In this document: positions 52,141 to 54,248 of the stretch, in pieces | Layout of the letters: each line of letters begins with the position of its first letter | Position numbering within the stretch: position 1 is the stretch's first letter | NCBI RefSeq assembly: GCF_000009045.1 | Contig: NC_000964.3 | Location: forward strand, 3,224,001 to 3,288,000 | Direction of reading: 5' to 3' | Length of the DNA: 64,000 nucleotides | Origin: Bacillus subtilis subsp. subtilis str. 168 | Lineage (GTDB): Bacteria; Bacillota; Bacilli; Bacillales; Bacillaceae | Translations under genes and position numbers: made by a program | The notes under the pieces: model-generated | The model's database searches: none | Seen by the model: the letters and a program-made list of their open reading frames with translations, nothing else | What the model was told of the DNA's origin: nothing

Positions 52141-52434
52141 TTATCCGCGGATTTGATTTGCGATGTCTTGGTCAGTAGACTCAAGTGTATTTGCTGTTTG
52201 ATCAAGCTGCTGATTCACATCTTGAAGCAAATCTGACATTTTGATAAATGAAGGTTTGAGCTGCTCGTATTGATCTGCGAACGCTTCGCTTGAAGCACCT
52301 TCCCACATGCTTTTCAAATCAGAGATCATTCGGTTTAAACGATCAACCTGATTTAATACTTCTTGGCTTTCAACGCCGTATTGCTTCGCCATCGCTCTTA
52401 GCTCTTCGGGTGTGACACGAATTAATCCTGCCAT
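52141..52434 (-). CDS. yukE: WXG100 secreted substrate (EsxA homologue), 97 aa
   Basis: IRVTPEELR...WEG motif...ANTLESTDQDIA. SD AGGAGG. Confidence 0.96.
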   Translation of the reverse strand: MAGLIRVTPEELRAMAKQYGVESQEVLNQVDRLNRMISDLKSMWEGASSEAFADQYEQLKPSFIKMSDLLQDVNQQLDQTANTLESTDQDIANQIRG

Positions 52435-52501
52435 ATTCCTCATTACCTCCTGTGCCATCAGCCTAAATATGGGCTAATTCACTTATTTTTAGAACGTCAT
52501 T

Positions 52502-52531
52502 ATTATAAAAACAGTTTTTCGGCATAGTCAA
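52502..52531 (-). promoter_or_regulatory. Proximal SigA promoter of the yuk/yue T7SS operon
   Basis: Minus strand TTGACT-N18-TATAAT. Confidence 0.7.
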
Positions 52532-52682
52532 ACAAATATGTTTTAATTTTACAAAATGAGTCCAATGGTTTACCCCGAATCACTCAAAAATGACATATAC
52601 TGTAAAGTAAATAGGTTTATTTTCTTAATCTTCTCTTCATTCTCCGAATAATCCAAAAGACCCAAATAACTCTCCAACTCCC

Positions 52683-52799
52683 AAAAAAAACCTTTCAGAA
52701 AATTTGATGCTACAGCACCATTTCTGAAAGGTTCAGTTTTTTCTTTCCTTAATTAGTCTTGCCTCCGATGACTTTCTTAGAAGATTAATAGGATAAGCT
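52683..52799 (-). ncRNA. Candidate ~115-nt small RNA or attenuated leader upstream of yukE
   Basis: SigA-like TTTGCA-N17-TATAAT (52833-52805), then a perfect 13-bp stem (52689-52701 / 52721-52733) ending in a T run on the minus strand. No start codon follows its GGAGG. Confidence 0.45.
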
Positions 52800-52954
52800 G
52801 TCGTATTATATGAGACATACACTGTCCTGCAAAAAGGCGATTACACCGCCAAATGTATATAGAACGTTTCTCTCATGAAATTGTTTTTTTGCTTCTGTTC
52901 TTTGTTGTTGATTTTCACAAACAACAACAATCATAATAAAAGGAAGGGGATGAG

Positions 52955-54223
52955 ATGTCAAAGAGAAATCAAGCACGAAAAGTAGGGAGATTTATGACCA
53001 TGCCGAATGATCCGTTTAAATATAGTTTTGACAGACTTGAAGATGTGGCTGATCATATCAGCGACGTTCTGCGGTGCCCGATCACCATAGAGGATGTTAA
53101 CCACAAGCTGCTTGCCTACAGTACACACAGCGACTGCACAGACCCTGCCCGGACGTCTACCATTATTGGCAGAAGGGTACCGGAGAAGGTGATTAACAAG
53201 CTGTGGAAAGACGGGACAATTCCTGCTCTCTTAAAAACGGACCAGCCGATCAGAGTCAAGCAAATCGATGAAGTCGGGCTGAGCAATCGCGTCGCTATTT
53301 CGATTTGGAAAAACAAGCAAGTACTTGGCTTCATATGGGCGCTTGAGATCCAAAAAACATTGTCCGATGAAGATCTGCTGACATTGCAAATGGCAGCAAA
53401 AGCAGTGAAAAACAAGCTTCTCAAACTTCAAATCAGAAAAACGAAAAATGAAGAACGCAGCCAAGAATTTTTCTGGAAAATGCTGACCGGACACATCCAT
53501 CAGGAGGATGATATGGCGGATGGGTTCCATAAGCTTGGAATGGCCGCTCCTTCAGAGTTTTCCGTTATGATCATCCGCATAAATGGCGAGCTGACTGAAA
53601 AAATCGAACAGCAGCTGCAATATTTACAGGAAACGACCCAGCAGGTTTACGTGCTGCTGGCGACCGTAGATTCCAATGAACTTATTATATTAACCTCACC
53701 CAAAACAGATCATCCTTTTCAAGATTTAAAACAGTTTGCTTTAAGTACGCAAAAACAGCTGAAGGAGCGGTATAAAATAGAAGACGTTTCTATCGCTTTT
53801 GGCGGAATATACAACTCTATTTCTTTTGTCTCCCGCTCCTATCAGGAAGCATTGTCCGTCTTAAAAACGAAGGAACGGTTCGCTGAAGAGACCAAACATC
53901 TTTTCAGCTTTTCTGAGTTAGGCATTTATCAATACTTAGATGTCTTAAATGAAAAACGGAAACAGGCGGGCCATTATAATTACTCGCTTTCCAAACTGGA
54001 ACAATATGACCGGGATCACCAGTCAAATATGGTAGAGACGCTAGAGCGCTTTATTGAAGCGGACAGCAACGTGAATACCGCTTCCAAGCTGTTAAATATA
54101 CACGTTAATACGTTGAATTACCGACTCAAGCGGATCAGCCAGATCGCTGAAATTGATTTGAAAAATGTGAATCAAAAATTCACCATCTATTTAGATATCA
54201 AACTTCGGCACATGGATTTGTGA
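52955..54223 (+). CDS. adeR: PucR/CdaR-family activator of ald
   Basis: N-terminal GAF-like region and C-terminal HTH ([15 protein letters not shown]). Upstream of ald. Formerly yukF. Confidence 0.92.
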
Positions 54224-54248
54224 AATTTCACAAATCCATGTTTTTTTA
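54211..54248. promoter_or_regulatory. Perfect 30-bp palindrome over the adeR stop codon (terminator and/or AdeR operator for ald)
   Basis: CATGGATTTGTGAAA / TTTCACAAATCCATG (54211-54240) followed by a T run. Confidence 0.7.

Follow-up and report, generated by a model that had tools for sequence, protein, structure and literature searches.

Why should a strong terminator-like hairpin lie between two genes that point away from each other? The question arises at the T7SS locus of Bacillus subtilis, where yukC, yukD and yukE are carried by the minus strand and adeR and ald by the plus strand. An earlier note on this DNA, made from its letters only, had pointed to such a hairpin in the gap between yukE and adeR, and had proposed that it ends a hidden minus-strand transcription unit. 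The unit was taken to be either an independent small RNA (sRNA) or the product of a distal promoter that is attenuated before yukE. The element is an uncharacterised example of familiar kinds, a short non-coding unit closed by an intrinsic terminator. In the literature searched, we came across no paper whose main text describes a terminator or transcript upstream of yukE, and the two T7SS papers that use the yukE–adeR region handle the entire gap as an uncharacterised 'Pyuk'.

Layout of the yukE–adeR gap

The window is the whole 64-kb stretch of DNA that was analysed. Its positions are converted to genome positions (NC_000964.3) by adding 3,224,000, an offset that follows from yukE (97 aa), which is placed at 3276141–3276434 of NC_000964.3 (Baptista 2013) and lies at 52141–52434 of the window. 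The gap measures 520 nt or 559 nt, depending on whether adeR starts at 52955 or at the conserved Met at 52994. Which of the two starts is used is ambiguous: a 422-aa open reading frame (ORF) from 52955 competes with a shorter start, MTMPNDP, at Met 52994; the majority of AdeR homologues are annotated at 407–412 aa, and the 13 additional N-terminal codons of the 422-aa ORF are unconserved in B. atrophaeus and B. velezensis. The features of the gap are as follows.

52531..52502, minus strand: proximal yukE promoter, TTGACT-N18-TATAAT, 11/12 matches
52683..52735, minus strand: intrinsic terminator, from its fold, the Term-seq point of termination and minus-strand-specific conservation
52683..52799, minus strand: predicted 117-nt non-coding RNA, assuming a start at P2 (3′ end from Term-seq, 5′ end from promoter geometry)
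52833..52805, minus strand: P2, candidate SigA-type promoter, TTTGCA-N17-TATAAT, 10/12 matches
52836..52850, minus strand: small hairpin, GGCGGUGUAAUCGCC followed by U5, abutting the −35 element of P2, judged non-functional
52900..52930, no strand: conserved palindrome, TTTGTTGTTGATTTTCACAAACAACAACAA, between or over P1 and the adeR promoter
52961..52933, minus strand: P1, candidate SigA-type promoter, TTGACA-N17-TATTAT, 11/12 matches, back to back with the adeR promoter

An intrinsic terminator on the minus strand

The hairpin is built from two arms, AACCTTTCAGAAA (52689–52701) and TTTCTGAAAGGTT (52721–52733), found with a repeat finder and in the sequence itself to be 100% complementary across a spacer of 19 nt. 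On the minus-strand RNA, 52733..52721 pairs with 52701..52689 to form an outer stem of 13 bp, which is completed by a 6-bp inner stem (UGGUGC/GCAUCA), a UGUA loop and an AAU bulge. All the parts described in the earlier note, the perfect 13-bp stem, the inner pair and the T runs, are thus present. The calculated stability is −23.7 kcal/mol (z = −5.5), a value equalled by 0 of 200 shuffles, and not one perfect inverted repeat of at least 13 bp arose when the 520-nt gap was dinucleotide-shuffled 500 times. The minus-strand stem is directly followed by U8 (52690..52683), whereas on the plus strand a CAG spacer separates the stem from T6.

The 3′ end of this unit is on record. Supplementary file 2 of Mandell 2021 (eLife, PMC8060035) lists 1400 intrinsic terminators obtained by Term-seq from wild-type B. 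subtilis in LB at mid-exponential phase. One of its points of termination, 3276683(−), is window position 52683, the terminal U of U8 (PMC8060035), and matches exactly the minus-strand 3′ end that had been predicted near 52683. The entry gives the hairpin as CCUUUCAGAAAUGGUGCUGUAGCAUCAAAUUUUCUGAAAGG, the tail as UUUUUUUUG and a dG of −19.7 (PMC8060035); in the window, this hairpin reads CCUUUCAG...CUGAAAGG, then UUUUUUUUG. Its label places it 249 nt ahead of the next coding sequence and prints the gene name ybdZ (PMC8060035); the name is evidently a slip because 3276434 + 249 = 3276683, the distance from yukE. Elsewhere between 3276400 and 3276999, the file has no point of termination on either strand (Mandell 2021, PMC8060035). 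The hairpin is a real minus-strand terminator, and RNA ends there in vivo at 52683. The unit proposed in the earlier note, on the minus strand and closed by the hairpin, therefore has its 3′ end in published Term-seq data. Of the paired outcome that the note had named as fatal to its proposal, no start near 52800 and no 3′ end at the hairpin, the second half is contradicted by the end at 52683.

The efficiency of termination (%T) at 3276683(−) is given as 17.14% in the wild type, 50% upon NusA depletion and 31.58% in a second sheet (PMC8060035). These percentages derive from median coverage in 10-nt windows (Mandell 2021, PMC8060035). They match small ratios (6/35 and 6/19), so that some tens of reads lie behind them and the efficiencies are approximate. 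The plus strand was considered as the terminator strand and rejected, as there is no plus-strand Term-seq site, a 3-nt spacer precedes T6, and A·C mismatches occur in relatives.

In its build, the element resembles canonical B. subtilis intrinsic terminators: the hairpin runs directly into the U-tract, the 3′ end falls at the end of U8 and an A-rich tract lies upstream. It differs from them in its place, which is not downstream of any gene but in a divergent gap upstream of a promoter, and in having a long (19 bp plus bulge), AU-rich stem and an efficiency of ~17% at low coverage. A Term-seq catalogue of B. subtilis intrinsic terminators is also said to have been compiled by Mondal in 2016.

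Candidate promoters feeding the terminator

The P2 hexamers reported in the earlier note exist in the sequence, and they are kept, 17–18 nt apart, in most of the eight species that carry the RNA body, the segment between the P2 start and the terminator. Six of seven such relatives score at least 9/12 at the site (TTTRCA or TTTAAA, 17–18 nt, TATGAT or AATGAT); B. mexicanus falls below 9/12, and the site has been deleted or replaced in four genomes (L005, L006, L007 and L008). The match to P2 alone is weak evidence, because this AT-rich region has promoter-like sites at only about twice the shuffle expectation.

P1, which is absent from the earlier note, scores above P2 (11/12 versus 10/12) and could feed the terminator equally well. 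It is present in all 11 species with an intact hairpin and is degraded in B. atrophaeus (TTGGCA, 19-nt spacer). The proximal yukE promoter starts 152 nt downstream of the 3′ end of the terminator.

Conservation across bacilli

Using AdeR as an anchor, we retrieved the gap from 11 species of the B. subtilis clade; outgroup gaps were obtained via AdeR homologues from B. velezensis, B. nakamurai, B. pumilus, three more bacilli and one Metabacillus. The block comprising the yukE promoter and 5′ UTR (52435–52565) is 99% identical across eight clade species and is recognisable in each Bacillus examined (B. velezensis, B. nakamurai, B. pumilus, L014, L016 and L017). The proximal yukE promoter proposed in the earlier note is real and nearly invariant among relatives. 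Homology to the window ends at 52653 in B. velezensis, at 52633 in B. nakamurai and at ~52572 in B. pumilus, L014 and L016. Thus, the block 52654–52899, which holds the terminator, the RNA body, P2 and the small hairpin, is specific to the B. subtilis clade.

Within that clade, the hairpin with U7–U8 is found in 11 of 12 species; in B. atrophaeus it has decayed (dG −8.1, z +0.65). Across the 11 species, canonical pairs fill 206 of 209 stem cells on the minus strand versus 189 of 209 on the plus strand, and dG stays between −20 and −25 kcal/mol on the minus strand, whereas it falls to −12.8 on the plus strand. Nearly all stem substitutions are transitions that leave a G·U pair in the minus-strand RNA and an A·C mismatch in its plus-strand counterpart. 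This pattern is suggestive of constraint on the minus-strand RNA helix, with only ~6 independent transitions to draw on. On covariation, which the earlier note had named as a check, stem substitutions keep the minus-strand helix, mostly through G·U pairs, and the RNA body shows no covariation.

Mean pairwise identities were calculated from the eight species that have the full element.

Terminator: 0.93
RNA body: 0.85
P2 (52833–52805): 0.815
52836–52895: 0.71
adeR four-fold degenerate sites (neutral reference): 0.73

The excess of the body and of P2 over the neutral reference may stem from a role of the RNA or from DNA sites used by regulators of yukE. Both segments are dispensable in some lineages. 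B. spizizenii DV1-B-1 (L005) has lost body and P2 by deletion, and in B. mojavensis and B. halotolerans (L006 and L007) unrelated sequence stands in their place; all three keep the hairpin and P1. The L005 deletion spans ~87 nt (equivalent to window ~52757–52845) relative to B. spizizenii TU-B-10 and takes the small hairpin, P2 and the 5′ half of the predicted RNA, leaving the terminator intact.

B. velezensis, B. nakamurai and B. pumilus have neither P1 nor such a hairpin. As all three have the yukE promoter, the element is no general T7SS regulatory layer, and the earlier suggestion that it adds one to type VII secretion cannot apply in general.

Two observations in the outgroups touch on hairpins of other kinds. 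Just upstream of the adeR start on the minus strand, B. velezensis (L012) has a palindrome, CTTTTCAGACTGAAAGG (dG −8.9, no U-tract), with a CUUUCAG/CUGAAAG core in common with the arms of the B. subtilis hairpin. In L016, whose AdeR is 74% identical to that of the window and which is without a symporter gene of the kind described below, a weakened P1 (TTAGCA-N17-TATTAT, ~3400–3445, minus strand) is followed ~40–75 nt further on by a different terminator-like hairpin (dG −12.9, z −4.6). L016 may be an independent instance of the arrangement of P1 and terminator.

A symporter gene apparently lost from the gap

In Bacillus sp. CLL-7-23 (L014), a gene for a 467-aa Na+/alanine symporter (PF01235) lies between yukE and adeR on the strand of yukE. 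It is read from a TTGACA-N17-TATTAT promoter beside adeR (2433–2461, minus strand) and ends in a strong terminator of its own, which immediately precedes the conserved yukE promoter. In Metabacillus herbersteinensis (L018), this symporter gene and promoter (~3420–3450) recur divergent from adeR, with no T7SS nearby. By blastn, window 52900–52962, containing P1 and the palindrome, is homologous to the promoter block of L014, and the middle block 52654–52899 sits at the position of the L014 symporter gene. P1 therefore seems to be an orphan, a promoter left behind when the B. subtilis clade lost its Na+/alanine symporter gene; if so, B. subtilis retains a promoter whose gene is gone.

The B. subtilis hairpin holds, as far as the layout of the two loci indicates, the same functional place as the L014 symporter terminator: the two share their position relative to the yukE promoter block, their strand and an upstream TTGACA-N17-TATTAT by adeR. 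They differ in that the hairpins have no sequence similarity and that B. subtilis has no coding remnant of the symporter, a tblastn search of the intergenic regions with the L014 protein giving only E > 1. With no remnant and unlike terminators, descent of the hairpin from the old symporter terminator cannot be demonstrated. The argument that divergent genes need no terminator is answered by history, since other bacilli have a co-directional gene at this site.

The palindrome at 52900..52930 is also conserved (identity 0.95), including in L014, L016 and L018. It is likely to be an operator and may possibly serve AdeR. A 9-mer, TTTGTGAAA, has only three copies within the 64-kb window, one in this palindrome at the adeR promoter (52900–52930) and one in each arm of the palindrome that forms the adeR terminator upstream of ald (54210–54241). 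As a putative AdeR box, TTTGTGAAA may provide for autoregulation of adeR and for control of the orphan promoter P1.

Proposed insulation of the yukE promoter

The reading that we favour, tentatively and as one that falls a little short of probable, is that the hairpin insulates the yukE promoter from transcription on the adeR side, the RNA being a by-product or a minor sRNA. RNA polymerase would enter the minus strand from a SigA-type promoter on the adeR side, P2, P1 or both, with a start at ~52799 giving an RNA of ~117 nt from P2 and a start at ~52926 giving one of ~244 nt from P1. The Rho-independent hairpin would then stop the transcript, incompletely, upstream of the yukE promoter. Its main role would be to halt most adeR-side transcription before it reaches this separately regulated, highly conserved promoter, and the released small RNA would be a by-product, at most a clade-restricted sRNA. 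We infer the firing promoter, insulation as the selected function and a small effect of read-through on yukE.

Insulation is favoured because the hairpin outlives the body, occurs only where P1 does, and has a gene with a terminator as its counterpart in relatives. Three genomes (L005, L006 and L007) keep the hairpin and P1 without P2 and the body, and P1 and the hairpin are absent together in B. velezensis, B. nakamurai and B. pumilus and decayed together in B. atrophaeus. This co-occurrence rests on essentially one clade and thus amounts to one or two evolutionary events. A terminator shortly upstream of a regulated promoter would block read-in and promoter occlusion. Like the insulating terminators between tandem units, the B. 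subtilis hairpin lies shortly upstream of a regulated promoter, that of yukE; unlike them, it follows a unit that encodes nothing, and insulation here is a proposal. The main point against insulation, and for attenuation, is the low %T (~17% in the wild type), a value from low coverage and one growth condition. The conservation of the body (0.85) and of P2 (0.815), somewhat above the neutral 0.73, could also speak against it, as do the missing symporter coding remnant and the lack of homology between the hairpin and the L014 terminator.

Alternative explanations

An independent trans-acting sRNA of ~117 nt, transcribed from P2 and base-pairing with mRNAs, possibly that of yukE, is on sequence grounds unlikely, although the unit has the right geometry (promoter, ~65-nt body and terminator) and a real 3′ end in Term-seq. 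The P2 hexamers are kept in most body-carrying species, and the body is more conserved than neutral sites (0.85 versus 0.73), with one highly conserved stretch (CUUAUCCUAUUAWUCUUCUAAGAAAGUCAUCGG). In being short, with a candidate SigA-type promoter and an intrinsic terminator, in a gap of more than 500 bp and confined to close relatives, the unit resembles the B. subtilis intergenic ncRNAs (tiling-array segments, Bsr/ncr); it differs from them in having neither an Rfam family nor a convincing target, and its body is dispensable in several lineages.

This dispensability tells against the sRNA: B. spizizenii DV1-B-1 has a deletion of body and P2, B. mojavensis and B. halotolerans have other sequence there, and the hairpin is kept in each. 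In B. mexicanus, the body has a 10-nt deletion. No structure is supported for the body (52736–52799): RNAalifold on the relatives returns the terminator and a weak 5′ stem without covariation, and nothing else. A scan of Rfam at a permissive threshold (E up to 10) gave only noise and no family. Among the 65 translation-initiation regions screened within the 64-kb window, that of yukE comes 8th by its best duplex with the body, which is equalled by 4.7% of shuffles; the predicted pairing with the yukE ribosome-binding site is thus no better than the background of other window genes. Expression is low in exponential LB. Of the sRNA claim in the earlier note, then, the unit with its 3′ end at the hairpin stands, and the loss of body and P2 in three hairpin-bearing lineages argues against a conserved sRNA function.

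Two further readings were rejected. Among the relatives, we found no body ORF with a conserved start, frame and Shine–Dalgarno sequence; the mini-ORFs ending in ...LILLFF or ...LILLIF, whose starts, frames and Shine–Dalgarno sequences are unconserved and whose starts lie upstream of the predicted transcription start, recur only because the underlying DNA is conserved, and a small protein was dismissed. Phage and plasmid collections showed no similarity to the element, and a mobile-element or phage origin was dropped on this ground.

Regulated attenuation, in which a distal promoter would feed the yukE operon and conditional read-through of the hairpin would control type VII secretion, is not supported, and we consider it quite unlikely. 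The apparent wild-type read-through of ~83% and the shifts in %T on removal of NusA or NusG are what it would lead one to expect; so is the Mandell 2021 pipeline label of the site as 249 nt upstream of the next coding sequence (PMC8060035), but the %T values come from very low coverage. Two results of Huppert 2014 point the same way, less intracellular YukE in an adeR::erm strain and a 3-fold drop in activity when the isolated intergenic region was placed at amyE instead of its native locus, both being weak evidence for which other explanations exist. Against these stands the position of the strong and invariant proximal yukE promoter (52531..52502): it is downstream of the terminator, so that the main yukE mRNA never includes the hairpin, which would be part of a yukE leader only in a hypothetical distal transcript. 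Folding and RNAalifold of the relatives revealed no conserved antiterminator pairing that competes with the hairpin, no leader ORF with a Shine–Dalgarno sequence and a conserved frame was found, and the Rfam scan contained no riboswitch or T-box match. The element is also missing from other bacilli with the same T7SS promoter. The attenuated distal promoter of the earlier note is therefore left with no antiterminator, leader peptide or Rfam family to act through.

The hairpin might instead be a decaying relic, a functionless leftover terminator (and promoter) of the lost gene. The position of block 52654–52899 at the L014 symporter gene, the homology of P1 to the symporter promoter, the neutral rate of 52836–52895 and the decayed hairpin of B. 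atrophaeus are all in keeping with this. We nonetheless regard it as rather improbable, given a hairpin identity of 93% versus 73% at neutral sites, changes that are almost only G·U-compatible transitions and a U7–U8 tract in 11 of 11 hairpin species; the missing coding remnant and the lack of likeness to the L014 terminator likewise count against it.

A further scheme would have the symporter promoter, probably under control of AdeR and alanine, rewired after the loss of its gene to read via a leaky terminator into the yukE operon, with the terminated product a clade-specific sRNA; we think this very unlikely. If true, the T7SS of the B. subtilis clade would gain an alanine- or sporulation-linked input beside DegU.

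Finally, a DNA-level role, in which the palindrome would bind a dimeric regulator such as CodY as an operator or roadblock, would surprise us greatly: both 13-bp arms are perfect and 52690–52704 in one arm fits the CodY consensus AATTTTCWGAAAATT at 13/15, but such matches occur at chance level in the 64-kb window (10 versus 8.8 expected), the substitutions spoil DNA symmetry yet leave the RNA of one strand paired, RNA rather than DNA binding accounts for the U-tract and the Term-seq 3′ end, and the literature searched contained neither binding data for CodY here nor a regulatory link between CodY and yukE.

Implications for T7SS work and annotation

The 3′ end of the unit is already public in the table of Mandell 2021 (PMC8060035), though unremarked. 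The finding is modest and unsurprising, as the 3′ end was tabulated, the unit is short and lineage-restricted, its start is a candidate and its function is proposed. It indicates no new mechanism and does not extend to T7SS control in general, close relatives with the same promoter lacking the hairpin. The hairpin merits a line in the annotation. Its practical bearing is on T7SS work in B. subtilis that uses the intergenic fragment as a promoter: published 'Pyuk' constructs use the whole intergenic region, and so carry the terminator and one or two extra candidate promoters upstream of the yukE promoter. If the hairpin does insulate yukE, the locus would be an example of gene loss that left an orphan promoter and a conserved terminator shielding a neighbouring regulated operon.

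Minor elements

Three other candidates in the gap were set aside. The small hairpin at 52850–52836, considered as a second terminator, has a dG of only −7.3 (z −1.6), lies in a neutrally evolving region (0.71) and coincides with no Term-seq point. A long-range pairing of 52779–52796 with 52617–52634 shows no covariation in relatives, and a 31-aa plus-strand ORF (52556–52651) is without a Shine–Dalgarno sequence. On the far side of yukE, a Term-seq terminator at window 52088 (−), genome position 3276088, lies 53 nt past the gene and has an efficiency of ~67%, in keeping with the abundant, separate transcript of yukE that has been reported ahead of yukD–yueD.
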